Source: Zygnema circumcarinatum SAG 698-1b
Lineage: Eukaryota > Plantae > Zygnematophyceae
Length of the DNA: 64,000 nucleotides
Reading direction: 5' to 3'
Assembly: GCA_037447605.1 (NCBI GenBank)
Contig: CM074820.1
Coordinates: 2,046,001-2,110,000, forward strand
Position numbers and translations under genes: made by a program. Below, piece by piece: positions 11,795-37,600 of this stretch. The first letter of the stretch is position 1, and every line of letters starts with the position of its first letter. The notes below the pieces were generated by a model. It ran no database searches. It saw only the letters and a list, made by a program, of their open reading frames with translations, and was not told the origin of the DNA.

Positions 11795-12278
11795 CAGTCT
11801 AATCACGTTATAGTGACACTGTTTATAAGAACAGCATGGATATACTGACTTTTTTTCCGGGAACGGAATTGCACCACGGAAGATCCTGCGCCAGTAGTGA
11901 CGCCATTACGGATATAACGACGCTGAAAAGCCCTAATTGTTACTATATGTTCAAAATGTCGATATTATCCACCCACGTATTGGAATATGCGTTACAAATA
12001 TATTACGACCGTACACACTATCGACTAAAACCGTCAGATATCGGCTTGACCGTACATATCAACTTGTCCGTACACATACTCACTAGGGTTCGTACACACC
12101 TACCCACGTGACGACTGCCCAAAAAGTACAATGTACGGTATAAAATGCGTACGGATATACCGCAAAAACATATCTAATAACATTGTTACTATAAATGTGA
12201 AATGACAAACGGGTCATTACCGATATAGTGACACAAACATGTGGGGACCGACACGGTCACTATAACGTGATTAGACTG
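11795..12278. mobile_element. Non-autonomous Tc1/mariner-type MITE, 484 bp
   Basis: Perfect 23-bp TIRs: CAGTCTAATCACGTTATAGTGAC (11795-11817) and GTCACTATAACGTGATTAGACTG (12256-12278). Both ends are flanked by TA (11793-94, 12279-80). No transposase ORF. Confidence 0.88.
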
Positions 12279-12398
12279 TACGAGGAACTGGTCCCAAAGA
12301 TCTCAGGACAAGAGGAAAAAGCTCGGAGTGAAAAACTAAAAAAACTATTATCATACGGTAGGTGTGTACAGGTCCAGTATCCGCGTGGTCGTAAAATC

Positions 12399-12446
12399 CA
12401 GATCAACAAATCTGCAGATCAACAAAGCTGCAGATCAACAAATCTG
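12399..12446. repeat. Three tandem 16-bp units CAGATCAACAAA(T/G)CTG
   Basis: Units at 12399, 12415 and 12431. Units 1 and 3 are perfect dyads CAGAT-N6-ATCTG. Confidence 0.9.
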
Positions 12447-14495
12447 TCCCCAAGATTTTACCAGATTTGAAGCTACGAGAATTTCCGAGGCCGGGAATCC
12501 TGCAGTCCGTGTCGGCTCCCCCACGTGCCACCAGAAGGGCCACGTCTGCTCGCCAGCTGGCACAATACGGTAAATTTGCAAAGCGCGCCGAAATCAGGAC
12601 ACGTGGTGGAACAGGGACCGTCCCAAAGGGACCGGCTCCGAGCTGGGTGAAAGCCCGGGTTTTGTGGGATCGGGGGCGGAGATCTGGACGGCTGAGATTA
12701 CAGGATGCGGTCAAGAACGGTCAGGATCCAAGGACTGTCAGGGTCCGGATCCGGCCTGGGATACCTTTGGGTGGCCGAGACGAATGGGAGGGCGCCACGT
12801 CATCCCTAGTTTGAAGCTCGTTCGGCCGATTATCCGTGGTGGATTTCTAGCCTCAGACTGGGGAGCCACTGGGGAGCTTTGTCGTTTTTGGTTCGTGGTG
12901 GATCGAGACGTACGGTGTGATTCGGCTGTGCTGTACGAATCAAGAAAGACAAAGATGGAATAAATTCGGGGTCATAAGAGAATCTGATCCGGAAGGTCGA
13001 TTTCTGGTATCAGAACGAATCAGCAGGTGCCACGTGGATTCGACACATGGTTCCGTTCAGATCTCTGTGGAAATTTGTAGAACTGTAACTTTGGCGTTCG
13101 TTGCCTTTAAAAAGCCACGGCTGCGATTGGTCGTGCCGTACGCCCCAATGTTTAACCGCCAGCAAGCTGGCAAACTGCTGTTCGTACAACAATTTCATGA
13201 CGTCACTCTTCCCCTTCCAGCCCAGATTCGACCCCCCGATCCAAAATTTCCGAATCCACCCTCCACAGTTCCCAGATCCACCCAAATCCCTTTCCGGTCG
13301 CGGTCCACGATTTGCAATCACCCGCAACTTCCAACAATCGTGTACACGTGGCATTCTCCCATTGGTTTTGGCCCCGGAATTTCTGGCCGTTGATACGCGG
13401 CGACCTGCTGGCCGCCGAACGTGCGCTGTACGGAATATTTGAGGCTGCGTATACCCCATTTGGTGCGATTGTATTTGGTTTTTTCTTGCGAATTACGGAC
13501 CTGATCTTGGGGGCGCGGATTGCGGGCAGATTTTGACGGGCGGCAATTTTGGCGGATCGGACCCGCTGGGATTCGCAAATCTGGCGCAGAGCTGGACACG
13601 TGTCAGCATCTGTACGGCTGCTGGTACTTCCAATGACCGCCCAGTGGACTTTTCTGCGTGGAATCAAGGTTTCAAGCTGCCCGGAGTTTGGAAACGGACT
13701 ATACATGGTATTAGTTTTGGACATAGAAGAGGGTTACAAAAACATGTCCTGTGGATTGAGAAAGTTTTTACCGTTTTCGGGGGAAACTTTGATTGGCTGG
13801 AAATTGCCCTTAAACCGACGTTGGCTCAAAGGCGAATACCTTTTCTGCCCGTGAATGTTTTTTCCCACAGCAATGTAATTTTTTACGTTTTATTTTGAAT
13901 TTTTGGGAGTTTAAAGAATTTTTTGCGTGGTCTTGAAAGGAAAGCCCTGAGACACAGCGTAGCCGATGGAGGAGGCAGACGACATTGCCATTTTTTAGTT
14001 TTCAGTTTCCAGTTTCTGGTTTTTGATCTCTTGCAGGCCGTGTAGAAGTTAACCTGGAAGCAGCGTCTGCAGAAAGGCAAGCCGAAAAGCAGCAGGAAAC
14101 GGAAAAGGAAACCCGCAAAGCTGCAACACCTTGACTGATCTCTACCATTCAAAAGACAAAGATTAAAAGAAAACAAAAATCTTGAAGTCTTTGACAGCCG
14201 CGGAAGAGCCCCTCCTGAACGGAAGCTTGCAGCTTCTCTCCTTGTTTCCCCTTCCCTATGCTCTGGTTTTCAGTACCTTTAGCCTCCTTTCAAGTATTTT
14301 TTCGCCCTTTTGATTCCGGAGCCGTTTAGGGCTTCCAGAGTCCGATTACTGCCGGGCGTGCGGCGCACATGTGAGTGCTTTTTTTCTTCTTCTCTCCCTG
14401 CCCCTTTTTTTGACTTTTTGAGGTGCATGTGGGCGGCCTGTTCTCCATTGATCCACAGGGTGGCACTGCAATGAGGGTGCCTTGGCTAGATTGGA

Positions 14496-14549
14496 CCAAT
14501 CACAATGTGCCACGTCAGGAACCATGCGAACGTGGCACGCCCGGATTGG
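14496..14549. promoter_or_regulatory. Dyad of two inverted CCAAT-N9-CCACG (ERSE-I-like) elements upstream of the large + strand gene
   Basis: CCAAT 14496-14500 + N9 + CCACG 14510-14514 on +. CGTGG 14531-14535 + N9 + ATTGG 14545-14549 is the same motif on -. Confidence 0.6.
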
Positions 14550-16382
14550 CTTTTGCTAAACAACGTACCTTCATTGGCATTTTCAGAATATTGTGATTAG
14601 GAGGTGCAACAAGCTTTAAAGAATCGAGAAGCTTGACTGGTGCTTGCTTGCTTGCGGATGCTTTTGAAAATGCCAAAAAGAACAATGAAATCTTTTTCTT
14701 TCTTGACAAAACAAGATTGTACACAGCTGGCTGGTCCCTTAAAGCTGTACGAAATTCTGTAAAGAGCAATTATGTCTCAGTACGAGAGAAGGAGCTGTAG
14801 GGGGAGAGGGAAAGGGAGGTTCGTCTGATGGGAGGATCGAGTGTTCTTTATTCCTCGACTTTTATCTCTCCAAGGCCTGCGCTACTTCTCACCATCACTT
14901 TTCTCCTTCCCTGTAATGCGGCCATTACCACGATTAAGCATTTTTATGGTGTAGACAGCTGGAAACTGCGACTCCAATCTTCAGAGATTCTTGTTTCTCA
15001 CTCTCTCTCACACACACTTTCTCTTTGTTTTTCGCCACGCGCTCTTCTGTCTCTCGCCCCTATCTCTTCTGTCGTTCTACCCTCACTTTCTCATTGGTCG
15101 TACTCTCTCCCTCTCGTCTGTCGCTCTCTTTCTCTTTCTCTCGCAACCACACACACACACGCACGATTCTGCTGCTCACAGTTTCAAGGGGGTAGGTCTG
15201 AACTGCAGATATTAGGGTTGAAAAGGCATAAGTGTAGAGCAGCTTGATGATGAGATCAGGATGCTTTTCCTTTCCTGCTATTCACAATTTTATTTCTCTT
15301 TGAATTCTGTATTTAGGGTCGTACTGGAGTATTTTTTTTTAAGGTGCCATATAAGAGTGTGTATATGAGAAATGACATATGAGTATAAAATTATATACGT
15401 CCATATACGTATGTATGGTCATATGATTTTTTTCTCATATTTTAATATATGAGTATATCTATCGATCGATCGATGTTCATCTTTCACTATTTCTATTGAA
15501 TCCCCTAGTTCATACATCATGGTATATCAAATATGTACAAATTACACATGTATGTATATTCATATACAAGTATGAAATATACAAACATCAATACAAATAC
15601 ATGTATATCCAAATCATGTCCTTGTTTCAACCTTCAGTAACAACTTGTATGGTATGAATATAGTCCAGTATGACTGTGCTGCTTGACATGAGAAGGTCAC
15701 CGTTGAATCGCGACGAGTGGCACGGGAAAGTCTGTGAAAATGATGTTCTAAACTTGCGTAGAGCAATCCATCTCAGCGATGAGCGTTAGCACGCGCATGT
15801 ATTTGCTTCATTTTCTGGTTCGAAATGTCGAGAGGAGAGAGGAAGGGAGGGACGGAGGGAGGGCTGGAGGGGAGAGGGAGGGGTGGAGGAGTGAGGGAGG
15901 GAGGGCGAGGGAGGGAGGGAAAGAGGGAAGGACGGACGAGGAAGGCAGGGGGNNNNNNNNNNAGGGAGGGAGGGAGGGAGGAGGTGGAAGGGAGAGAGGG
16001 AGGGTGGGTGGGAGGAAGGGAAATTAGAGTTGGGGAAGGAGGGATGTGGAGGGAGGGGAAGGGGTGGGGAGGGAGAAAGGGAGGGTCGGAGGAAGTGAAA
16101 TTAGAGTTGGGGAAGGAGGGAGGGGGGGGAGGGGAAGGGGTGGGAAGGGAGGGAGGGTGGGAGGGAGGGAGTGAGGAGGGAATGTAATTTGGGTTCGCGA
16201 TGCCAGTATGCAGTAAACTTGAATTTGTGCAAGCTTTTCGAATCAAACCCTTAATGCTATTGGAAGGTCATCTTTTGGAATCATGGATTCCAGCTGTACT
16301 GCCTTTGTGCCTGATTCGATTATTTTGTCAATGCGCATGCATGTCCTTGCAGGAATCGCTAAAGTTGTTGCAGCAGAATCTT

Positions 16383-19300
16383 ATGAAGCATTCCGATCAT
16401 CAAAAAGTGAATAAAGCAGGAGCTTCTTTTGAGCGAAGGTGAGGTCCAGTTCCAACCGTGGAAAAGGACGGCAGACTACTTCTCGGCTCAACCAACCAAC
16501 CAGAATAGGGGCCAAGTCACCTTCTCCTTCACCTCCGGGAGGAGGCGGACATGGGCTGCTTGGCTTGGAAGAGAAGGCCTTGCGGGTGACTCACAGAAGG
16601 CAGGGAATTGCGCAGCTGGAGAGGTTTAGGCTGCAGGAATTGCGCGACTTTGAGCAAAGAGTTGCGGAGACAGGTGCAAAAAACTCTAAAAATTCTCCAT
16701 TTCTGTCAGATCCCATCTCAATTCCAGCTCAGGAGACTCCTGCATACCTTCCCTCGTCCTTTAACAGCGGGCATTACCTTCCTTCAGCATCTGCGGATGT
16801 AGGTTTCACTTCGGCAGCCTATTCGTCGAGGTATGTTGTTTCAGTTTGTGCAGACAACTATCCATTAATTCAGTACTTGATCCATTCATTCGTTCTTTGC
16901 ACAAGCGCAGTCACTGGTGGTGGGATTCATTTAAAAATACGATTAGTAGTACTGATTCGTTCGACGTGCTATAGTGGTTAATCATAATGTTCGGTGCTTT
17001 TCTTGCACCTTGCAGAGAGGGTTTGCAGACTCAGGAGGCCCCTGGAGGGCAAGGGCTCGAAAGCAGGCTGGCGGTGGTACGCCCCTCGTCCGATACTGTG
17101 AGCTCTCTAATATGGCTTTTATTGGTCCTTAATCCTCATTGATCTTGTGTATGCCAGTCACTTTCTTCTTATTCCTTATCCCTCTCATTCTTTACAGTTG
17201 GATAGTCTTGAATTTGAAAGGTCTATCCACCTCTTAAGTTCTTCACAACAGATGCGTGAGTGAAAAGGTGGCAGATTCGCCTTATATCTTTTCTGAGCTG
17301 AACTTCCCATGAAGATAATGTCCAATACTTGCTGAAAAAAACAACTTCTCTCATTCGTGTGTGGCGATTTGCAGAGGAATGGAGTGACAGGATTGTCCCC
17401 TTTGTTGAGAGAAGGCTGGGGGGTCCCCTCTAGTCGGAGCCAAGGTGCTCAGCAACTTTCTATCCTACAGTCTGCCCCGGGACATTCAGCAGGAGGAGAG
17501 GGGTATCGGAACAATTCCGCAATTGGACAGTCTCTTCTTCAGCAGGCAGATCAGCCCCCCCTTGGAAGGTGAGGACAATTTCAACGTGACCTTTTGTTGG
17601 TTTAATGTATGAAATCCATCTCAAATGTGCGGATGCGGATAGATTTTTTTTTCGCGTGCTTTCTGTAAACGAGTATCCTGAGCCGTCATTCCAACACGAG
17701 GAAGCATTCCTCTGTTGTGTAGATTACTACCAGCTTCAAGGGTTTTTTAGGTGTGATCGAAGGCGAGTTCTTTCTGTTTGGGCCCACAGGGTTACGCTTT
17801 AAGCGATTGTGCTTTAAGCATGTCAATGTTGTTATGTTATATCCTTGTGTCGAACAGATGGGTACATCAATTACAGTCCTAATGGCACTGAGTTTTGAGT
17901 CATTATGTGGGGGCTGCTGTGCAGAGAAATTTACTCACGCTCAGAGGATGTACGATACCATCCATCTTCTTCACACGACTTAATTGACAGGAGGAGAGAA
18001 CAATCTTTTCTCGATGGTTCATTGGCTGGGAGAACGCCTTCAGAGGCAGGATACTTGGATTCCCTCACTCGACGGTCGGATGAGCGACAAATGGCAGGAT
18101 ATCGAGCCCTTGATGTGCCAAGAAACGACCGGGGATTGGACCGAGGGGGTAGCTCAGAAAGGAGAATACTTGGATTTGGTGACACATCACAGAATGGGTC
18201 CCACAGATTGATAGATGATCTCTTAGCTAGAGATAGGGAAGGCGGTGGTGCCTCTAGCCTGCCTTTCAAATCGTCGTTTGATGGAGGGTGGAGGGGGCCT
18301 GCAAGTCTCTCCGATCCGGGTCTCAGGGGGTTGTCTCAAACTGGGCTTGGGGGGATATATGGGTCTCCTTTAAGTGTAGAAGCGGAAAGGATGCTCGCTT
18401 TAGGGCATGAAAGAAGGGGAGATTTTGGACGGCTTGAAAGCTTCTCTGGAGGATCCGGATTGGGGCAATCTGTGGGAAGGGGAGCAGACATTTTGGCAGA
18501 ACTTGGCGTTCCTCCAATGGGAAGACCGTTGGGTCAAAGGACTGATACGTGGCAGGAAGATTGGGATCGAAGAGGAGGATCAGATTCAAATTTGTTGAGA
18601 GCTCAGAAGGCAGTGCAAGACATGCAGGCCAACATGCTGCGATACTTTGGGCCTGTAGTTATGGGCAAACTCCAAAGGCTCATCATGGAGCAGGTGCATT
18701 TCTAGATGCTATGGCAAGTTAACTATGTGAAGTTCTCTCTATTCATTTCCAGTCCTCTGTTCACAGAAAGGATACGGCGGGAACCCAGGGTCTTAATCCT
18801 AGTCGTTGGTTATGCAAAGGGAAAGGACTGAAATGCTCGTGTAATGTATAGCGGTCTTCCCATTTATCACTTAGAAACTTGAAGCGAAGTTCTCTTTCTG
18901 GGGACGGGGGGATGTCTATGTTGATGCATGATAATATGGCTATTTGTCTCATTTTCATTTTTAATCTATTATCAGGACATGGTACATGCGGAGCAAGTAC
19001 GGGCATTGCATATAGCATACAAGGTGAGAAGCTTTGGCTATACTCAAATTCGAAGACCCTAATGTTCCTTTAGGTGACTCAGCTAGAGAAACTTGTCTCC
19101 TCAAAATGGTTCAAGTACAAGGCTTCGATATAACGTTGAACTGATGCGTAGCCCTAACTTGGTGTATAGGTTTGTCTAAGGCCTAGACTGTGTCTCGTTT
19201 CTTATCTCTGTTTTCCACATTTTGGCATTCCTTTAATTGCCTCTTTCTTCTCTGCCCATTGTTCAGCGCCAACGGCAAATTGTTGCCGAATTACAATCGC

Positions 19301-22300
19301 TTGAAGCGGCTACGCAAGATCCAAGAGGGGCTGTTGGAAGAGATCTTTGGGGAGATCACCGACGAGGAAATTTGGGCCTTCATTCGAGCCTCAGTTACGG
19401 GGAGGTGTGTAATCAGTTGAATCAATTGAACTGACATGCATTTGATGAAATCACAGGTTTGCCAAACCTGCAAGGTTGACAGTGATTATTTTCAGTCCCA
19501 TCCACAACGTGTTACCCTTCTTTTGCTGTGCTTAAAAGACATTCTCTTCTATTATATAGCTGAACATGCTGTACCTTCTTCGGCAATGTTCTAAATCTTC
19601 CATTACCTCGCTGACTTACATGATAGGTTGCCATGATTATTGCACTTATTTCAGAATGCTGTGGATCGAAATACAGTAGCTTCTTCGATAGTCTCGTGTG
19701 TTGCATGTGGCGTATGTCAACTTGAAATTTGAGGAATGTACGCTTCTGCCGTGAAATACTTCAGGTGGCTATAGGGCGGACTGAAGCAGACAATTCCTTA
19801 AGCAAGGTGGAGGCTGTAGAACGGACGGAGGATAGCAAACCGGTGAGTTATGGGATTTTTTATTTCATAGTTATATCATTTCATGGCAAGCGAGACCTCG
19901 TCATCAGCAGGGATGGTTTGATACTTCATCATCAGTATATTGCTCTCGGCCTTTTTTGTGGCTTGAAACGCTGTAGTAGTATTAGTGAAGTTTACAAGTG
20001 TAATAGCTTAAATTTACGTAGAATAAGCTTCACTTAGAAATGAAATGAAATGTAAAAATGTAAGAAATGAAATGTAAGCCTTGGTTAACCCTAGCTAACC
20101 TTTGCTTGTTAACACTTTGTTGGCCATTTACAGAAAGGGAAAGTCGACCGGGAGGTCCGACCGAGGCTTGATCTGGCAGATCTGCAAATGTTCATACGCC
20201 CGGGAGATGAAGGCAGTCAGGTGCATTTCTTAGTTATTATTTGAAGCGTAATTGGAACGCCAAAGAATTACCTGCATTCATCCTTGTAGGCTCACATGCA
20301 CAGAGAAAGTTAGGACACAGTATATGGGGTACACTGCAATTCTGAAACCACAGAGTTTTGTCTAATTTCTCCTACTCTTTCTCTCCTCTACTTGTGATGG
20401 AGGGATTGCAGAAAGTAAGTGGGAAGTCAGAAAGACGAGTTCGTCCGAAGCTTGATCCTGAAGAGGTAAGAGGCGAGCTTCGTTCACCCTTAAGGAGAAA
20501 AGGGACATGTGCAGGTCTGGTCTGTTGCAGGCCATTCATGCTGAAGGAAAGGTAGAGGAAATCGGGCTTCATTCATTAGCTCATTGCTTATTCCAGAAAC
20601 TTCTTATCCTTCAAATTTTGCTTTCAGTTGAAAAGCTTGAGCTGAAAGTGACGATGGTATCAGTCGCCAACGCTGTGGGGTAGCCATCAAATTTGCCCTT
20701 TTTGGTTGGAAGTTGTACTTTTGACTTGTTGTCTCAATTGAACGAATAGCTGTTTGCATTTTCAGCATAAGTCTTACCAATGCTAAAGCTTGATGTTGTT
20801 CTGTTTGTTGATGTTTGACTCACACAGAAAGCAGCCATAAAAGCTGAAAAGGAAATTCGGCCAAGGCTAGATCTGGCGGAGCTGCAGATCTTCATACGAC
20901 CAGGAGAAGAGGGCAGCCTGGTAATTTCTGGCCAATCAATAATGGTTACTTTTGAGAGGAACAAGAGGGGGGAAGAGAGCGAGAGAAAGAGAGGGGGAGG
21001 GAATGGAAGAAGGAGAGGACGAGTGAAGGAAGAAGGTGAGGGAGGGGACGAGGGAGGGAGAGGGAGAGGGAGAGGGAGAGGGAGAGGGAGAGAGAGGGAG
21101 NNNNNNNNNNGGTTGTGCGATTGTGTTCAGTTCTTCGAGTAAGCCTCTTAAAATAAGCATTGTAATCACTCCTATTAACCCAAGTACTTTAGGACGTGGA
21201 TGTGCCATTTGTCAGCTCATGAATCATTCATGTGATTTTGAATTACGCGACCGAAAAGGATTTTCTATGCACCAATAACGCTGTCACTCTTTCTGTGATT
21301 TGAAAAAAAAACATGGCAGTTTATATTCTCCCATCAGCCCTAGCTGACTAGTTAGCCATGACTTGGGTGGGCATTTGCAGAAGGGCACAGGAAAGGAGCG
21401 GAGAGTGCTGCCTAAAGTGAACCTTGAAGAGGTGAGAATTTCAATACATGCAGAGGTTGAGATCCCCCCTCAATGCTAATTCTGCTGTCCGAAGAAAAAA
21501 ATTAAGTTGAATACGGGCTGTTGGAGACCATGTCACATCCATTCAGATAGTTAGCGGTCCTAGTTGCCAGTCTGACTAGTAGTATAGCTATCCTTGTGGC
21601 TTACAGAAAGCTCAAGGAAGGCCAGGCACCTGGACGAAATTGGATCTTTCTGAGCTGCAAATGTGTATATACCCAGGAGAAGAGGTATATAGCTGGCTAT
21701 GCTGCTAATTTCAAGTTAAATTACAAGCACTCACATGCAATCGTTGAGTTATACAAACACAAGACTGCTGGTCAATTAACATGACTCCTCAACCCCTCTC
21801 ACAGGCAAATGGTTCCCGTCACAATGTGTGGAAGTTGTGTCATTATTAATTAGATCTGTTCATTCCATGGTTGAGAAGAGGGGTTTGCAGAAAGCAGGAG
21901 TGAGGGCAGTCAGGGAAGTGAAGCAAAAGATAGAGGCTTTGACTCGCTCGGGAGATCAAAGTAGCCAGGTGGGGTTCTGGGCACATGGAAAAACTCGCTT
22001 TGAAGAAATATGAGAGTGGATAATTCATTCAATGTTGAGTCCTTGAGAGTTTAAAAAACATTAAACCGGAGTCATGGGCTAAACTAAGGTGTGGTATCTT
22101 GAAGGACGAGCTGATTGGAGAGTCAATGCTTGTCCTTACCGATTTTAGGTAAATTTCTAGGATAAAGTGGCTTGGACTAGTTTCTGCAAGTCCAAATTTT
22201 GGTGCATTTTTAGACGGTTGTCTTGCATATGAATTTCAATGGCACAGAGATTGTGCACCGCTTGTTGCGTTTGTTAGTCAATTTACCTTTTGTCCGGACA

Positions 22301-25300
22301 AAGTTAAGCCCTGTTACTTGAGTTCTTTTACGGTCTTATCCGTGACTTTGAAGAGCTCCCACCAAATGGCCATTTAGAGTTTCTACTCACTACTACTCAC
22401 TGTGTAGTTATTGGTCAAAGTGCTGCATTTTTATTTCTGAAAAAGGTGTTTGCCGCATGCATCATAGTACAAAACCAAACCCTGAAATTATTTAGCCTAA
22501 GAGATTTTGTATTTAAAAAAGTGTTGGGGTTATGCAGAAAGGGCCGCAAAAGGTGGACGGAGAGGAGCGGCGAAATCTGGACCTTGAAGAGCTGCCAATT
22601 GCATTGCGCTCAGAGAAGGAGAGCAGCCAGGTGCAGCTCTGCTTCTTTGTTCATTGCTTTTCTGTAAGACATAAAAGCAGAAGAGAGAGAGAGAGCGCGA
22701 GAGAGGGAGAGGGAGAGGGAGAGGGAGAGGGAGAGGGAGAGGGAGAGGGAGGAGGGAGAGGGAGAGGGAGAGGGAGAGGAGAGGGAGAGGGAGAGGGTGA
22801 GGGAGAGGGAGGAGAGGAGAGGGAGAGGGAGAGGGAGAGGGAGAGGGAGGGAGGGAGAGGGGGAGGGGAGGGAGAGGGGGAGGGGAGGGAGAGGGAGGGA
22901 GGGAGAGGGGAGAGGGCGAGGGGGATGGGGAGGGACTGGAAGAGGGGGAAAGAGGGGGGGGGGGGGGGGTGACGAGATTCTTGCCAGTTTTTCTGATAGG
23001 AAAGCCTCGGTTCTATAGAGGTATCCGCTTCAGAAAAGAGGGAGTGGAATGGATTTTATGTTTGATTGAAATGAAATGAAGTGTTTGCATTCTCATTGCA
23101 TAGTCATTACTCAGTCTCACTAACAGCATAGCTAAAGCTGAGGGGGGGAAAACTGCAGAAAGTGGCAGTCGAGGCTAGCAAGGAAGTGAGGCCAAAACTG
23201 GACCTTGAAGAGATTCCAAATTCGGCACGTGCAGAAGAAGAGAGCCGTCAGGTGCAGCTCTTGCATGCTTTTACATGCTTTATAGAGATGATCCAAATGT
23301 GAATATTGCTACGTTGTAGTTTCTGGTTAGAAAGTTGTATTTGGGGCTAAGTCTTCTGTAACCTTTGTTAAGGGATTCTGCTTGTATCGCTCGAAGGAAA
23401 AAAGGTTGGCCTTACTGCTACTGTTTTTTGTGGTTGAAATAGAGTGCGAGAGAATGCAAGCCTCCCTCTCCCTCTCTCTCTCTCTCTGATCACATTATTT
23501 TGGCTAAGTTGTACGACCATTGTGGCGGCCTTTACAGAAGGTAAAGTCGGACAACGAAGACAACAAAGACAACGAAGTCCGCCCAATTCTGGACCTTGAA
23601 GAGCTTCCAATCGCCACACGTGTGGAAGGAGGGAGCAGTCAGGTGCATATTTCATCCACTTTAAATCACTCATGCTTCATTAAATATGAGCCACAGTGCT
23701 ATTCCCATATATGCTATTCCGGAAACTGTAAACTGTGAGTTTTTCCTCAGATTGGAAAGCATTGGTTTTTTGGCTTTTAAGTCTGTGGAGTTTACGGTCT
23801 TGTGTATTGCAAGCATTTTCAGCTATGCGCAGAAGCAATATCAATGCATCACCGATTTTCATGAAGAGTACCCTCTTCCTTGAACTCATCGCTCGTGATC
23901 CTTGAGCGAACTTTTCAGGGTATAGAGAAGGATGCTGCGAAGGTGGAGACACGTGTGAGTGTGGAGGGGAGCGAGTCTGGGCAGCCCATTGAAAATGTGG
24001 GGAAGAAGGTGAGATATTAATTGCTTCTTGTCATGTCGAGAATAAGAGGCTATCCCGTACTTATTGCACATTAGTATAGACTTTCCTTCGCTCCCACTCC
24101 CATTGCCATTGCCATTGCCATTACCATTACCATTCCCATTCCCATTCCCATTCCCATTCCCATTCCCACTCCCACTCCCACTCCCACTCCCACTCCCACT
24201 CCCACTCCCACTCCCACTCCCACTCCCACTCCCACTCCCACTCCCACTCCCACTCCCTCCCTCCCTCCCACTCCCTCCCTCCCACTCCCACTCCCTCCCT
24301 CCCTCCCTCCCTCCCTCCCTCCCTCCCACTCCCACTCCCACTCCCACTCCCTCCCTCCCTCCCACTCCCTCCCACTCCCTCCCTCCCTCCCTCCCTCCCA
24401 CTCCCTCCCACTCCCTCCCTCCCTCCCTCCCTCCCACTCCCACTCCCACTCCCACTCCGTTTCCATTATGTCTGCTTAATATAGAAGCACCCCAACTTGC
24501 ATCTACAGGAGTTAGGTGAAGCAAGTATCGCTGATTCTGGAGAAGCTGAGGAGTTAAATAAGGCCGAGCCAAGTCTTGAAGGAGAAAGGGGAGAAAAGAG
24601 CGCAAGTCAGATCTCTCTATTGACTTCACCTATGGAGGTTGAAACTGAGAAGCTGACACGGAAAAGGAAGGCGATGGAAGAAAGCACTCGGAATGAAGAG
24701 TTGGATGCTGGAAATGGAAAAGGAAGCGAAGATGTGGGGAATGTAGAAGTTGAAAAGTCAGTGGAGGATAAACAAGGGAATATCAGAGTAAATCCAATTC
24801 TGAATTCTGAACAGCAGCAAGTCACCACACATGAAGGGAGCAACCAGGTGAAGCTCTCGCATGTTGTGAATGTCGTTTTCTTGGTCGAGTAAGAAAATTA
24901 CATGACCAATTCCTGCATGTTAATTTCTGAGACTCATTATTGCATCATGGTTTGTGTGGGGGCTGAACTTGCAGGGGTTAAATGCAGAAACTATTAACAG
25001 GGAGGCAGTCGAGCAGTTCACTAGCAGTGAAACTTTTGGTGCTGAAGGGCCCCTTACTGGAGGTGTTGAGAAGCAGGTGCAATATACCCTTTGAATATTC
25101 ATATTAGCCATATTCATTAACTCTTATTCAATTCCAATTTTACACCGAAATCGAGGCTTCTAGTAAGATGTTTGCTGCTCACATGAGGCTTATGAGCCGT
25201 CCATTTGCATATAGTCATATAGTCATATCTGAAGGCACATTTCTGACTGATTTCCGTCCTTCTACTGCTCTTGCATATTTTTGGATTGCAGGAAGGAACT

Positions 25301-27370
25301 GAACCTTTTAGAGAAGCTTCTATTGACGTTTCTCGAGCAGCTGAGGGCAATCTGTATACTGAAGAAGCTGCAGCAAAGTTAAGGGCTTGTGAGAATTCTG
25401 TGCTGCCTTCACCTATGGAGGTTGACTCACCTACAGTGAGAGCTATGATAAGTAATAAGGAAAGAGCATCAGGTCCTGAGATTGATATGCGAGCACAGCC
25501 GAAGGGAGATGACGAAATGGAGACTGACGAAGAAGAAGAAGGAGAAGAAGAAGAGTTGAGGGATACAAAGGAGGCGAAGGTTGAGCAGGGGAGCAAAGGC
25601 ATGGATGATAAGGAAGGGACTGTTGGAGAAGAGAGTAAGGCTTTAGCACCTATGGAAGTTGATGTTTGTGTGGTGGCAGTAGGAGGCAGTGATGCTGTTA
25701 GTAATTCTATGACAACCAGCTTGGATGCAGTTTCTGGAAGAGAGGAAGGGTTGAGGGTGGAGGAGGAGAGAGTGATTCTCGAGGAAAAACAGGTGGGAGT
25801 GGGGAGCACGAAGCTGGAGGAGTTGAAGCTTGATAGAAGGGAAATGGATGGTGAAAATCAGGAAATTATGACAGAGACGGGCGATAGGGCGGTGGACGGG
25901 AGAGAGGAGCGGGAGGAGCAGGAGTCGAAGATTGCCATTTCTGTAAGGGATGGAAGTGATGAACCTGTTTTGGCTTCAGCTGTGGAGATCGACGCGTCCA
26001 AGGTGGAAAAGAAGGTCAGTAAAGGTGTGGGCTTAGCTGCGGATGCTTCTCAAAAGAGGGAGAATTGGGAGAGCAAAACGGAGGAAACTGAATAGGTAGA
26101 GCAGGTACAGAATATGAAGGTTGTTGAAGATTGGGAGGCTCTTAACAAGTGCGATGTTCTACCATTGCTGCATCTTGAATGTCTGGGAATCTCAGCTCGT
26201 GTAGAGGTAGAAAATGGCGAGGTATAGCTCGGGGAAGTTGTGCAATACAGAATTTCAGTTTCGTCGTTTGGGCCTCATTTTTGTGCACTGCGTTAATTCT
26301 TGTGGTGTTTGCAGGAATTAATGATGGTAGCTCTTATGACAGAGCAAATGGGGCAAGGGCTGAATGCTGGGGAGAATGAAGCTTTAAAGCAGGTAAGCTT
26401 CTCTTGGCTTTCTACAAATGGTCTGAGTAAGAATTCATCAAAACTGAAAATGAAAATACGCACTTAATTGTCTAGTCTCTTTGGTTGGTGCATTATCCTG
26501 CGAACCCCGAAACTACTGAAGTTTCTCTTCTAATTTTTTCATTTTGATTATAAATGTGAGGTTGAAGTGCTACCTTGGTAATTGAGCTGTCCTTTTGCTT
26601 ATTTCCTGTTTTTTTTTTCCCGGCTTGTTTGTCTCTGTTTCTGAATCTCCTTGGAGTTATATAAACAGGAAGGAGTTGGTCCAACTGTAGTGGATACCCC
26701 AGGCAGTCCTCGAGAAGCTGACGCATTAAGTCGAGAAAACATTAGCAGTGAAGTGGGTGCGATTCAAGGACCTACTTTAGTTTCAGCCATAGTGGTTGAT
26801 ACTTTTGTGGAGCAAACATTATTAGAAACGGAGGGAAGGGAGGATGAGATAGAAAGGAAGGTGAAGCAGGTGGAACCGATAGAGCAAGAAACGGAGAATA
26901 TCGGAGAAGGGAGGGAGGCAGAGGGTGACAAGGAGGTAGAAGGGGTGACGGTGGGGGGTGGGATGGAGAGGAAGGAGGAGAAGGCCGAGCAGGAGGTAAA
27001 GCAAGTGGGAGTGGGAGATGTGGAACAGGGAGGTAAGGAGATCAGAGGAGAGAAGATGGAGGGTAAGGAGTTGGACGAGGGAGAGGTGGAGCAGAAAGGA
27101 AAGGATGTGGGAGAGAATTTGAAAGCGGCAAACGAGGAGGAGGTGAGGGTGCAGACGATGGAAGAAGAGGGAAAGGTAGAGGAGAAGGGCAAGGAAATGG
27201 ATGTTATCGTCGCTCAAAAAGGTGAGGGAAAGTCAGAGGGAAAAGTAGAGGGGGAGGAGGCGACAGTGCAGGAGGGAGGGACAACGGAGGAGGGAAAGAT
27301 GAACACCGCTGACGTAGGGCTGAAACCATCACCTATGGATGGTGGGGACATCAGAGAAGAGGAAAAGTAG
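16383..27370 (+). CDS. Large multi-exon protein of unknown function: N-terminal SPOROCYTELESS/TIE-like motif, Gly/Arg-rich region, helical segment, nine repeated mini-exons, long acidic tail
   Basis: A chain of open GT-AG exons, mostly phase 0 in the repeat and tail regions, includes 16504-~16830 ([16 protein letters not shown]), the large ~17900-18696 exon, 19765-19842, nine repeat exons 20134-23642, ~24508-24847, ~25293-26014/26221, 26315-26392 and 26669-27370. Start ATG 16383 is inferred through a 65-nt intron (16439-16503) that is phase-compatible. Exact start and exon usage are uncertain. Confidence 0.65.
20134..23642 (+). repeat. Array of nine paralogous phase-0 mini-exons (51-105 nt), most encoding (R/K)xxPxLDLx(D/E)L
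   Basis: Exons 20134-20220, 20412-20465, 20828-20920, 21381-21431, 21607-21684, 21891-21968, 22538-22630, 23159-23251 and 23538-23642. Each follows CAG, starts with a Lys codon, is a multiple of 3 and ends at GT. Confidence 0.85.
24096..24458. repeat. Compound intronic microsatellite (TTGCCA>TTACCA>TTCCCA>CTCCCA, then mixed with CCCT)
   Basis: Directly visible hexamer series. Confidence 0.9.
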
Positions 27371-31800: not shown

Positions 31801-32788
31801 GAAAGGCTATCCCTCCCCCCTCCCCCCTCCCCCCTCCCACTCCTCTCCGAGATCATGCCAAAAAAACTGAACGACAGAAACTGTACTAAAACTCACGAAT
31901 TAATCGAAACATTGCATTTCACATCAAAACCAACATTAAAAGAAACAGCCAGTCCTTCCAGAGCAGAGCAGCCCCCTCCCTCCCCCTCTTCCTTTTCTGA
32001 AGGAGAAGGAGTGCCTTACAGGCGGCAGGTCCTCCAAGACATCTCGCAGCATCAGACCTTTCTCCAGCCTCTTTGCCAAACCAGGCTCCTCCTTCCAAGC
32101 CACAAGGGTATCCTGCTTCCCACAACAGTCTGCTTTGGAAACTGATCCTTACCACTCTCTCTCCCCCACCATACATCCCTCCCTCCTCCCTCCCTGCCCT
32201 TCTCCCTTTCTACGTTCCTCCTCCCTCCTTTCCCGACTCTCCCACCGCCCTCTCTCTCTTCTCCTTCCTCTGTTTCTACCATGCTCTTTACCTTTGTTTC
32301 CTCGCTTCACGAACTTGGATCAAATCATGTAATAAACTCCCCCACGTTTTTTTTTTTTTTTTTTTCCAAACGAGGGGTGATGAGACGAAGCCTCTCAAAA
32401 GGCCGAAAGGAGCCTACCTTGAAAATTCTAGGGATGGAATTTTTCATTTCAGTGCAGAGGTGGGTAGGCAACGGAAACTGAGGCAGACTCTGGAACATAG
32501 AACCCCACATAGGAAAGACTAGTCAAATCGATTCTGAGCTCATCCGGGCGGGAGGGGAAGCTGATGGGGCTTCCAAAGTGTTTCGACTAATATAGAAGAA
32601 TTTCTGTTCATCTTTTTGAACAAAAGCCGTTTTATATCTTACTTTATTCAATTTTACTTTTATTTTTTGGTCGGATGCTATTGCACGGAAGCCTCACCTC
32701 GCCAGAACGAGCCCCAAAGAAAAATGCTCGAAGGCGGAATTGTGCGACTCCAAATGACCCAGCCACCAGAAGGCCGGTCCGACTCTGA

Positions 32789-32836
<48 letters not shown>

Positions 32837-34639
32837 GGAGAGAGAGAGAGAGAGAATCTCGATTAAAAACATAGAGAGATAGAAAATAGCTAGTAAGCTT
32901 AATTATACAAATGGATACTAGCTTTTGGAGACCCACCTGGTAATTCATATCAACGAGAAACTTAATTGCAATTTTTGCAAGTACTCCGCCTCCGACTTTC
33001 ATCAAATCAGAGACGTTTTCCATGAGCACATATCTTGGGCGAAGGAATTTCACAATATTCATAAATACGAGAAGTTGGCGATTTTTCTCGTCAGTAAACG
33101 GATTCACAGTATCTCGATATAGATTATGGCCACTCACTCCCTGACAAGGAGGGCCCCCACATATCACTCCAACTTCCCCCTGCAAAATGCTCAATTTCAC
33201 CATAAAGATTATCACTTTCCATACATATGAATGCTTTCTTCTCTCTTCTCTCTTCTCTCTTCTCTCTTCTCTCTTCTCTCTTCTCTCTTCTCTCTTCTCT
33301 CTTCTCTCTTCTCTCTTCTCTCTTCTCTCTTCTCTCTTCTCTCTTCTCTCTTCTCTCTTCTCTCTTCTCTCTTCTCTCTTCTCTCTTCTCTCTTCTCTCG
33401 CTTCTCTCTCTCACGCTCTTTTTAGAGTCTCTCACTCATCGTCATGCTCGCGATATGAATAAGCATTCGATGTATTGAAATTGAAATTTTAGCGACAGAA
33501 GTTTTACCATTTCGTTATGCATCTTACCGGAAGTGGAAGAAGTTTGTCTCTCCGTGATTTTTGTACGAAGGCCTTCAAAAGGTCTTGGCATTGCCTGGAG
33601 TCCCAGCACATCCTCAAAATTCATTCAGTGAATGAGGAAGGAAGCTGCCAAGAAAGATCATGAAAAGGTGAACTGGGTTTTCACCTTCTGTACGGTTTTT
33701 TTTCTCGCGATTTGCAATTCAATCTAAGCATACCACAAAGTCAGATTGATAAAATTATATCAAGCACATGTCCACATTTTGAGTGCCAGTTTTTACTTCA
33801 TTTTTAACGCAATTCTACACCTCACAATTAACAGCAAAGTAGGGCGGGCATAATTCAAGAAATGTGCATACTCAAGGTTGGATTCGGGCTCCCAAGTATC
33901 CTCGTCCTCCCCATAGCCTGCCCATCTCACCTGCACCCCAAAAAATGCCAAAAATGCATTCCTCAAAAAGGAGCATATTTCCACCCTAGAACAAGAAGAA
34001 AACTGCGACCCCATTCATCTTGTCTCCCTTTCTGAAGATGGTCTTCTACAAAAAAAAGAACCGGCAAAAAGTACTTCTCTCTTACTCGAAATTGAAGCCT
34101 TGATTTGCAGTAGTTGATGCCCACTATCTCCTCCACTTCGTAATCATTTTCCTCCTTTGGTTGACCCTTCGCATTCCTCGCACCACTTAGATTCTCCTGC
34201 TTCCTTTTTCTCCCGCTGTTCTTTCTCATTCCCTCTCCCTTTCCCTTTCCCTCTCCCTCTCCCTCTCCCTCTCCCTCTCCTCCCTTTTTCTGCATCCCTC
34301 TATCAGCATTACTCTCTTCCGGAAACCTGTCACAAAGCCGCTTCCATTCCTTACAGAGCTCTAAAAAGTCTTCAGCATTTCCATTCCGGACCTGTTCCAT
34401 TACACAGCTCTCACCATTTCATTAGGCCATTCAAGCTTTCAGAATTTTGGACCTTTTTAGAGTTACAGGTAGTTCAAGATTTCTATGGATTCAGATGTTT
34501 GAAGCTTTGTGTGTTTGAAAAAGAGTAAAGGGTCACCAATGAGTTATCCACTTCAACTGGGGGGAGGGGGGGAAGGGGAGGGAAGACGAGGGAGAAAGAG
34601 AGTTTCGGAGAGAAAGGGCGAGAGAGAGAGAGAGAAGGG

Positions 34640-34680
<41 letters not shown>

Positions 34681-37600
34681 AGAGAGAGAGAGATGAACGC
34701 AAATGCTCACCTCTGTGTGAGGATGATTCTGCATGAAACTTTTGCAAGCGGCTAGATTTGAATCCACCGCCCACCGCTGAGAAAAGACAAGTCGTATCAT
34801 AACGAAGTCAAAAGACTAAACATATGAATTTAACTAAGAGGAATAGGGGGTGACAGTGAAATGGAGCGGGAGAGGGCAAGGGGAACAAGGGAGAGTAAAG
34901 TGGAGAGAGAATACGAAAGACGAGCAAATGGGAAGAGAAGAAAAGCGGAAATGAAAAAAGACAAAAGTAGGAGGGAAGAGAAGGAGAAAAAAATCAGGAA
35001 ATACAAGAGAATGGAAAAGGGAATGAAGAGTTGGGGAGGAAGGGGGGGGAGAGAGAGATTAAAGCCACAGGAAGGCAGCAAACGGAGAAACCCCTATCGA
35101 AAAGTGGTTGCTGAACCCTACCGTTGTGAGAGTCAATCCTGCAAGAGAGGCTCCCATTTCAAGGCCGGTAGACATGCCTCCACAGCCGCTGTAGAGGTCG
35201 AGGAGGAGGGCCTCACCCTTTTGCTCCGGCAAGTTCACATCATATGTGCCATTCTCTTTCACCCTTACGACAACAATTTCTGTGAAAAAAATTCAAAAAA
35301 AGAATCATAACTAGGTAAGGGAAATTTTCTTTTTTGCATTCAGGGTTCTACTCAAGTGATGGCATCAGTTTTTCTACGCAGTTTCCCAATCATTAGGTAA
35401 GAAATTCAATCCGAATAAAGCGACTCTGTGACACTGTCATGATGAAGCCCGCAACCCCGGAACCTCGCTCCATGAAGGGGAAGGGGAAATTCTGCGGATG
35501 TAATACTTTGGAAAGAAGCTCAAGATGGCTCACCATTTGTTCCCTTCGTTGAGGCCCTCTCTAAGGAGACATTCTTTGGGAGCATGTGAGGGAGTTTCCC
35601 TATCCGGTTTTCCATCTCATTCGGGAAGGGAGCATCTGCGTCTGTTTGGCGAGCAAATGCATAAGCATGTGGTAAAAAGAGAGAGACACAAAGAGAGGGA
35701 GAGAGAGAGAGAGAAAAAGAGTGAGAGAGAGAGACAAGCTGGGGAGGCAGAAATGGGAGAAAGGTGCAAAGGGGCAGAAGGGGAGACGGGCAGAGAGAGG
35801 GAGGGAGAGAGGCAGAGAAAAGGAAAAATAAAAGAAACACATTGATGAAATGCATATACGCTTTGCTGAAAAAGGACGGAGCAGTGTTCACATATGAGTA
35901 GGCCCTGAGGGTTATGAAGCCTCACCTGCCGGTATGTCAAAGAATGAAGCATTTTCCTCAGAATATGCATGATGGTAATAAAAATCGCAATCTGGGATTT
36001 CCGTCTGCGACACATTATTAAGATAGATTCTCAATTCACAGGTGGGTCCTTGCAGACTATAATTTTGAGAGTATAATAATTCTAAGCGTCAACTGTACTT
36101 GTTTAGACTTTAAACGGTTGTAAATTTCCAATGTTTCTGCACCAGCCGTTTCCAGTTGTATAACAGAAACATTCACTTTGAGCTTCCACTTTAAAAAGTC
36201 GGTGCTTGTCTTCAGGCAACAGCATGCTAAACATCATGTTCATATCTAACATTTGTTGGTTTTTAGTATCTGGAAGGAAAGGCTTTCAGGCATTCAGGCT
36301 TTCAATATTTTATGATATTAAGGGTCAAAAATAAACGTACTGCTTCCAGTCCTGGAGGGACTGGCACTCGAATGACTTTGAGAACTCCAGTAATTGTTGA
36401 AATGGGTTGAGTGCCTTCCAGCTTAGACCACCAAATTTTTTTGGAATTCAAAGTTTCCGGTTCGCCTTCTTCGCCTTCTCCACCTTCTCCTTCTCCTCCT
36501 CCTTCTCCTGCAACTGCCGCTCCTTCGTCTTCTTCACCTTCTTCCTCTCCTTCTCTTTCCTTGGGAACACTCGAGGCTCCTTTGGGGACCATGCTTGCCC
36601 ACTTACTCGAATTAGCAATGACCTGTTAGTTAAACAAGTCAGAAAACATTGAGAATAAATATAACGCGCAATTCGTCACATTTCATAACTTACAAATTGG
36701 ACAGAGTTCACACATTTTATTAGGAAAAAACTGACGACTTGTTAAGGATATTGAATCAACTTTTATGAGACAATTAAAGAGACATCATGGAAAGAAAGCA
36801 TTTTCAGACATTACAACAAAGAGGGCACAAGAAAAAATTTCGACTTTCAGTACCGTGTCGTTTTCTTTGTAAAACCAACGAACTCGATAGAATCCTTGGC
36901 CGGCCACAGTCTCAAAAAGCTCCAAGACTGTTCCAACATAAATGCCCTCTTCTGCCTGCAACAGTCATCGAATTCAAAGTGATGGAAATCTCTGTCACGA
37001 TGCGCAATCTGATTCAGAAAATAGGGGGAGGAAGAGAAAGGAGATAGAGATGGGGAGATTATGGAAAGAAGAGAGGAGGACGATGAGGTGGAAAGGCCAG
37101 AGGAGAGAATAAGGAAGGAGTTGGGAGACATATAGAGAAGAAAAGAGAGTGGAAAAGGGAGAGAGGGAAGGGAGGGAAAAGTAGTCCATAAATTGCAAAG
37201 ATACAAACCTGAATAGAGACATTTTGCCCAATAGTCACAATGAAATCATCCACCGTGACCTTCATGAAGTGTCGAGAAAAGGGTTGGTCCAGTCCTTTTT
37301 CATCTTCCAACACGCTAGTTTCTGAATATCGGAAAGGCCAAGATTTCCTGGCCTCCTCTTCCGGAATAACGTCGTCGGGAATGAAAAAATAACCAGGCTC
37401 GTCTTCTGTCTCTCCATCTTTCACTTCCACCATTTTCGCCTATGCGGAAAGGAAAAAAATAGCAACAGATGTTAGGAAATGTCAAATACTGCACATCTGA
37501 GCTTGGACATAATGGGGGCAATCATAGAGAAGAGAATGAGCGGAGTATGAGTGTGATTATCTGTATGAAAGAGAGAGGGAAAGGTGGAAGAGAGGAAAAA

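Follow-up and report, generated by a model that had tools for sequence, protein, structure and literature searches.

How does a run of very short exons encoding similar peptides come to sit within one gene, and what might the repeated peptide do for the protein? The question is raised by a 64,000-nucleotide (nt) stretch from the alga Zygnema circumcarinatum SAG 698-1b (assembly GCA_037447605.1, contig CM074820.1, positions 2,046,001 to 2,110,000 of the forward strand), referred to here as the window, in which a preliminary description made from the letters had pointed out nine mini-exons, designated m1 to m9, between positions 20134 and 23642 (all coordinates are those of the window). We report that these exons are expressed in spliced RNA. 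We consider it probable that they form a tandem exon-duplication array in one long plus-strand gene, at about 16.4 to 27.4 kilobases, and that the array is a lineage-specific, multivalent set of linear motifs in a disordered protein.

Anatomy and splicing of the mini-exon array

Translation located all nine mini-exon peptides on the plus strand, each exon preceded by AG and followed by GT. The lengths of m1 to m9 are 87, 54, 93, 51, 78, 78, 93, 93, and 105 nt, all divisible by three, and all nine exons are in phase 0; for most of them, both alternative frames contain stops. A repeat profile built from the nine peptides and run against the six-frame translation of the window returns exactly nine matches, scoring 29 to 64 bits, with the next best at 11 bits. 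The introns after m7 and m8 share the start GTGCAGCTCT, as had been described. The features are as follows, with expectation values (E) taken from a leave-one-out version of the repeat profile.

16450..27367, plus strand: whole inferred gene, 21 exons, open frame of 1,468 codons
19267-19404, plus strand: exon e, 5' of exon f in the same RNA contig
19765..19842, plus strand: exon f, constitutive, 78 nt, phase 0, directly upstream of the array; joint 19842 to 20134, GT..AG, in four of four runs
20134..20220, plus strand: m1, type A, 29 residues, RPRLDLADL core; joints on both sides in four runs; E 2e-16
20412..20465, plus strand: m2, type B, truncated, 18 residues, RPKLDPEE; E 7e-5
20828..20920, plus strand: m3, type A, 31 residues, RPRLDLAEL core; E 4e-14
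21101..21110, no strand: assembly gap, a run of N in intron 3 between m3 and m4, within a (GAGAGG)n microsatellite
21381..21431, plus strand: m4, type B, truncated, 17 residues, LPKVNLEE; E 0.03, borderline
21607..21684, plus strand: m5, type A, shortened, 26 residues, KLDLSEL core; cassette exon; E 0.003, moderate
21891..21968, plus strand: m6, 26 residues, no LDL core, only a type-A-like tail RSGDQSSQ; cassette exon, skipped along with m5
22538..22630, plus strand: m7, type C, 31 residues, LDL core; E 1e-6
23159..23251, plus strand: m8, type C, 31 residues, LDL core; E 4e-9
23538..23642, plus strand: m9, type C, 35 residues, LDL core, four-codon insertion near the start; E 4e-8
23919..24008, plus strand: exon g, constitutive, 90 nt, phase 0, directly downstream of the array; joint 23642 to 23919 in four runs
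24509..24847, plus strand: exon h, cassette exon, 339 nt, phase 0, with one SPMEV site and the sole RKRK basic patch

Five sequencing runs of this organism, from two studies, contain the stretch; contigs from four of them (X1 to X4, again covering two studies) were mapped on positions 19700-24050 (4,351 letters). The contigs are spliced and therefore derived from RNA. They contain twelve joints, every one of them GT..AG and exactly at a predicted border once the cut offset is allowed for. The joints from exon f to m1, m1 to m2, m2 to m3, and m3 to m4 are constitutive, and the onward series runs from m5 to m6, m6 to m7 (present in all runs), m7 to m8, m8 to m9, and m9 to exon g. The donor of m4, at 21431, is the branch point of alternative splicing, and joins to 21607 (m5), 21891 (m6), or 22538 (m7). 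The joint to m5, with m5 to m6 following, occurs in X1 and X3; the joint to m6, skipping m5, in X1 and X4; and the joint to m7, skipping both m5 and m6, in X2, X3, and X4. No joint from m5 to m7 was found among the contigs of the four runs. Across these runs, then, the optional part is either m5 by itself or m5 plus m6, while the remaining seven mini-exons are always included. The double skip predominates in the 2025 study, and the 2019 run has inclusion forms only.

Junction contigs extend at least 23-28 letters on either side, and the starts of m5, m6, and m7 have only AAAG in common; the three joints of the m4 donor are therefore not assembly chimeras of similar exons. Single contigs link exon f with m1-m2-m3-m4 and m6-m7-m8-m9 with exon g, so that m7, m8, m9, and g stand together in one contig; no contig of the four runs spans all nine mini-exons. 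In X1, a 2,490-nt contig carries exons e and f with m1 to m4, and a 3,044-nt contig carries m6 to m9, g, and onward sequence. Contig depths are unusable as isoform ratios. Within 19763-24009, X1 depth is 176 for the contig of the 5' half and 755 for the contig from m6 onward, for which a 3' bias or an internal start is possible.

The proposal that all nine exons belong to one transcript is thus borne out by consecutive GT..AG joints at the predicted borders in four runs, which join the nine exons in frame and in more than one isoform. Inclusion and skipping joints are both present for m5, for m5 with m6, and for exon h, as in cassette exons; after 24008, the X1 contig continues to 24509 (exon h included), the X2 contig to 24975 (exon h skipped), and X3 and X4 have both. 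This is not a mutually exclusive exon cluster: copies are joined one after another, and we see only skipping, never the choice of a single copy. The further proposal that any subset could be skipped in frame, tuning the number of motifs, holds as to the phase-0 symmetry and the skipping of m5 or of m5 and m6. It is not borne out for the other seven exons, which are always included in these contigs, and the skipping seen changes the number of LDL motifs from six to five only. The 2025 runs also contain unspliced contigs across m4, m5, m6, and the introns between them (21402-21968), at a depth above that of other introns, which suggests slow splicing in the alternative region. If intron 4 were retained, translation would end early at an in-frame stop.

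The assembly gap leaves this picture intact. The joint from 20920 to 21381 spans it in contigs of all four runs, and by the coordinates of the X1 record nothing further stands between the joined ends. In X2, an unspliced contig can be followed from 21409 back to 21111, beyond which it has 32 nt of GA-rich sequence that the assembly lacks. The gap is intronic and is spliced out, and the reading frame is therefore independent of it. Purine-rich (GAGAGG)n tracts lie on the sense strand at 20964-21100 and 22683-22946, starting within about 50 nt of the m3 and m7 donors, and a (CTCCCA)n tract at 24091-24458 occupies the intron downstream of exon g; the tracts coincide with contig breaks.

Around the array, a chain of GT-AG exons from 16450 to 25076 is open for 968 codons in the frame of the mini-exons, and appending three further predicted exons extends it to 1,468 codons with no stop. 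In this gene model RNA supports every junction between exon e and exon i, and those of exons a to d and j to l are predicted from sequence alone. The translated model of 1,468 residues is rich in Glu, Gly, Ser, and Arg (Glu 14%) and of low complexity; the encoded protein of about 1,470 residues is charged and probably disordered. An X1 contig extends about 558 letters further 5'. A 19-codon frame, one base out of register, starts from an ATG at 16383 (16383-16450) and may represent an upstream start exon, an upstream open reading frame, or an assembly indel.

The LDL core and the history of the copies

Six LDL tripeptides are present in the 1,468-residue model, solely in m1, m3, m5, m7, m8, and m9, and always as LDL-x-(D/E)-(L/I), with the hydrophobic register L-x-L-xx-L kept in all six copies. 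The motif R/K-x-P-x-LDL-x-(D/E)L had been attributed to most of the nine exons; the LDL core is indeed found in six, and the strict form R-P-x-LDL in four. By sequence the copies fall into three types. Type A, comprising m1, m3, and m5, reads LDL-x-(D/E)-LQ-(M/I)-(F/C)-I-(R/Y)-PG. Type B consists of m2 and m4, which both end after GAAGAG, and type C, comprising m7, m8, and m9, reads LDLEE-(L/I)-P. AlphaFold2, applied to the repeat alignment, predicts a single helical turn over the core L-A-E-L-Q at a mean pLDDT (predicted local distance difference test) of 65, in keeping with a linear motif of a disordered chain and not with a domain.

When each copy is left out of the profile in turn, m1, m2, m3, m7, m8, and m9 are recovered with significance, m5 with moderate and m4 with borderline scores, and m6 is not detected by this repeat profile. 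At the DNA level, similarity between copies stands 9 to 16 z units above shuffled sequences within exons and is at about zero in the 120-nt intron flanks, ending at the exon borders; blastn pairs of copies show 61-77% identity, and m6 resembles the other copies weakly (z 1.2-2.8). Neighboring exons are thus similar, share a common and symmetric phase, and occur in the same transcript, as in a tandem exon-duplication array. Their description as duplicated phase-0 exons is upheld by the borders, the lengths divisible by three, and the exon similarity, most weakly for m4 and m6. By the leave-one-out scores, speaking of nine duplicated exons is safe for seven and likely for m4; for m6 it rests on position and end motifs.

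Among the copies, the proportion of nonsynonymous differences (pN) is 0.14-0.35, and that of synonymous differences (pS) is 0.6-1.0, which is saturated. Codon choice for the conserved R, P, L, D, and L residues varies synonymously from copy to copy. Saturated pS together with low pN indicates that the duplicates are old and were kept by selection on the peptide. Within one genome it is well supported by these sequence comparisons that the duplications are old, that they escaped homogenization by gene conversion, and that the peptide, not the DNA, has been under purifying selection.

The order of events is less fully recorded. The sequence A-B-A-B-A of the first five exons had been attributed to duplication of a two-exon unit; m1 and m3 are mutually closest (pN 0.14, pS 0.64), as are m2 and m4 (pN 0.17), and m2 and m4 share the same end, which agrees with that proposal, but the introns retain no similarity that would prove it. 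It had also been suggested that truncated copies arose through new donors after GAAGAG. The intron after m2 does resemble the lost exon tail (z 3.7), the signal after m4 is weak (z 2.7, with controls at 2.4 or less), and the intron downstream of m5 contains no remnant of a lost tail.

Relatives of the repeat and of further exons of the gene were sought in several ways. A search of the repeat profile against 1.84 billion protein representatives returned no relative, and the alga's own protein was likewise absent from the results. Because that protein was not returned, the lineage may be missing from the library, and the blank is weak evidence for lineage restriction. The only two profile matches, P0001 and P0002, are translated satellite-like repeats built of PDLSDLQIC or TRAGDQSSQ units, and we rejected them as relatives. 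Pfam searches with six and then three exon translations (E up to 1 and up to 10) gave two chance-level matches (E about 0.06, below the cut-offs) and no NOZZLE domain. Residues 1-133, encoded by the N-terminal exon, yielded 86 candidates, none at E of 0.01 or below, in a word search that covered only proteins of 100-318 residues. In the ESM Atlas, exons a and d found no usable match (best score 0.76).

What the repeated core may do

The anatomy and expression of the array are solid; from its sequence we infer a multivalent docking function. One ancestral phase-0 exon of about 30 codons, running from K...EVRP-x-LDL-x-E-L to ...SSQ, has at least seven clear copies, with m4 a borderline one; m6, which has lost the core, escapes detection by the profile. 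Symmetric phase-0 exons would allow such an array to grow by unequal crossing-over, and the same symmetry would let splicing set both the number of motifs (six or five) and the spacing between the A/B and C blocks with the frame intact. The six LDL-x-(D/E)-(L/I) cores would then constitute a putative multivalent short linear motif, which may engage one partner, in several copies or at several sites, the partner having a hydrophobic groove with basic residues alongside it. Rewiring of interactions by cassette exons that lie in disordered regions and encode binding motifs is an established route (PMC3437557). The exons described there and those of the alga have in common that they are in frame and optional and carry a short linear motif within a stretch of chain that is charged and probably disordered; they differ in that the alga's motif has been repeated by exon duplication and its optional copies are the most degenerate.

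Several points weigh against this account. Degeneration has gone furthest in the two exons that are optional, and the shift in valency therefore amounts to one motif. The conservation of the exons could in part serve exon definition, as with the GAAGAG of m2, m4, and m7 to m9. The constraint is read from paralogous copies only, and the searches found no relative of the repeat from which conservation between species might be gauged. Both ends of the gene model also raise doubts. At the 5' end, an in-frame TGA lies at 16430 and exon a is devoid of an ATG, and a search of 12000-16440 for an upstream start exon gave no convincing ATG exon with the right phase. At the 3' end, the stop could lie at 26093 should exon j be left unspliced.

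That the repeats have no specific partner, and form a charged spacer conserved through exon-definition signals and a general charge pattern, seems unlikely to us, although much is compatible with it: exons this small require splicing enhancers and the GAAGAG hexamer is rich in purines, Glu makes up 14% of the low-complexity protein, the profile search found no relatives, and m6 is spliced in without a core. Such a spacer does not readily account for a pN far below pS, for the retention of the L-x-L-xx-L register in six copies, for the different codons used for conserved residues in types A and C, or for a type A core that lacks GAAGAG. A partner of a familiar kind would be expected if the cores were akin to the EAR (ethylene-responsive element binding factor-associated amphiphilic repression) motif, recruited TOPLESS-type co-repressors, and made this protein an algal forerunner of the TIE/SPEAR adaptors. 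TIE and SPEAR proteins are not known to exceed a few hundred residues, against about 1,470 in the alga. The cores do begin with LDL in acidic surroundings, as many EAR motifs do, and the N-terminal region contains a basic 16-residue stretch (16592-16639) that may resemble the helical SPL/TIE motif. TIE proteins combine an N-terminal helix with a C-terminal DLELRL; whether they originated before land plants is an open question, and no algal TIE was found (PMC12349606). SPEAR homologs have been selected by their NOZZLE domain (PMC9880897). An acidic, LDL-type hydrophobic peptide is what the alga shares with TIE, SPEAR, and SPL proteins (PMC12349606, PMC4650584, PMC9880897), but its motif is internal and repeated instead of single and C-terminal, and it comes without LxLxL, DLNxxP, or a NOZZLE match. 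The canonical definition of EAR, LxLxL or DLNxxP as used in PMC4650584 and PMC9880897, is satisfied nowhere in the 1,468-residue model, in which the third hydrophobic residue of the cores is shifted by one to give LxLxxL, and so the EAR-like label of the preliminary description is not supported. No NOZZLE domain matches the N-terminal exons with E relaxed to 10, the N-terminal word search had no hit at E of 0.01 or below, and neither candidate C-terminus has LxLxL. We therefore regard co-repressor recruitment as improbable, and kinship with SPEAR/TIE, tried as a candidate, is not supported (no NOZZLE at E up to 10, no C-terminal EAR motif). Still less probable is a fuller version, in which a forerunner or analogue of TIE/SPEAR binds a transcription factor through its helical N-terminus while the LDL-x-E-L exons act as a non-canonical multivalent array for recruiting TOPLESS, with the number of sites set by splicing.

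The same description had alternatively seen in the mini-exons docking sites (D-sites, basic-x-L-x-L) that bring a mitogen-activated protein kinase (MAPK) to S-P sites further downstream. An ELM-type D-site expression matches m1, m3, m4, and m8, and three SPME, one APME, and one SPMD site follow downstream. Four matches are no more than shuffles of the same composition give (2.3 +/- 1.4, P = 0.19), and m5, m7, and m9, half of the six LDL exons, keep the core without a basic cluster and go unmatched. The best conserved residues, namely the D and the acidic-plus-L/I tail, fall outside the D-site definition altogether. The downstream S/A-P-M-E/D sites, cited as S/A-P-M-E-V in favor of kinases, do exist but prove nothing about kinases, and MAPK docking strikes us as very improbable. 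The spacing could also suit a leucine-rich nuclear export signal (NES), of the pattern hydrophobic-x-hydrophobic-xx-hydrophobic-x-hydrophobic, read by exportin 1 and counterbalanced by optional exon h: five of the six cores fit class-2 spacing, against 0.5 in shuffles, and the only four-basic run of the protein is found in that cassette exon. The pattern is loose, though, the copies are not independent of one another, a proline falls inside it in m7 to m9, and we know of no design with an array of six NES, so that we give this idea little credence. Multivalent docking by a linear motif outside these classes is the reading we prefer.

The surrounding gene and the place of the array among known systems

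Exon duplication may not have been confined to the mini-exons. Exons h (24509-24847) and j (25292-26014) share A-x-x-x-S-(L/V)-L-x-SPMEV-(E/D), which occupies residues 32-46 counted from the start of each exon and may mark a second duplicated module; the pair aligns in BLASTP at E 0.011, and APMEV and SPMD sites occur further on. All sixteen exons from e to k (19267-26392) have lengths divisible by three, and nearly all of the C-terminal two thirds of the gene could be tolerant of exon skipping or duplication. RKRK, which is the protein model's one stretch of four successive basic residues and a possible nuclear localization patch, is encoded in optional exon h, and skipping of that exon could alter localization. 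On the minus strand, at 32697-35300, lies a candidate chromomethylase-like gene, recognized by eye in open frames from a cytosine-methyltransferase motif and a chromodomain-like exon; a long microsatellite coding for (EERREKR)n adjoins it.

Animal genes contain arrays with one repeat per exon, differentially spliced and encoding disordered proteins, as in the PEVK exons of titin, the repeat exons of treacle (TCOF1), and tropoelastin. By analogy, the algal architecture is of this known kind. It has in common with these systems one short module per exon, symmetric in-frame exons, tandem duplication, and the optional use of some copies. It differs in that it belongs to an alga of the plant lineage, is built from the unrelated module LDL-x-E-L, varies in two of nine exons, and implies no mechanical or nucleolar role.

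The literature that we found on the splicing of duplicated exons consists mostly of animal studies. The Zygnema array adds a clean, RNA-backed case from the plant lineage in which tandem duplication has built up a protein region one exon at a time, and one that joins old paralogous exons with a selected nine-residue core, truncating shifts of the donor, and a splicing option that falls on the copies most decayed. Once a partner was known, the array would offer one to six motifs as a natural series in which the effect of valency and spacing on binding could be followed. Should that partner be TOPLESS, the array would bear on the origin of the TIE/SPEAR co-repressor adaptors.

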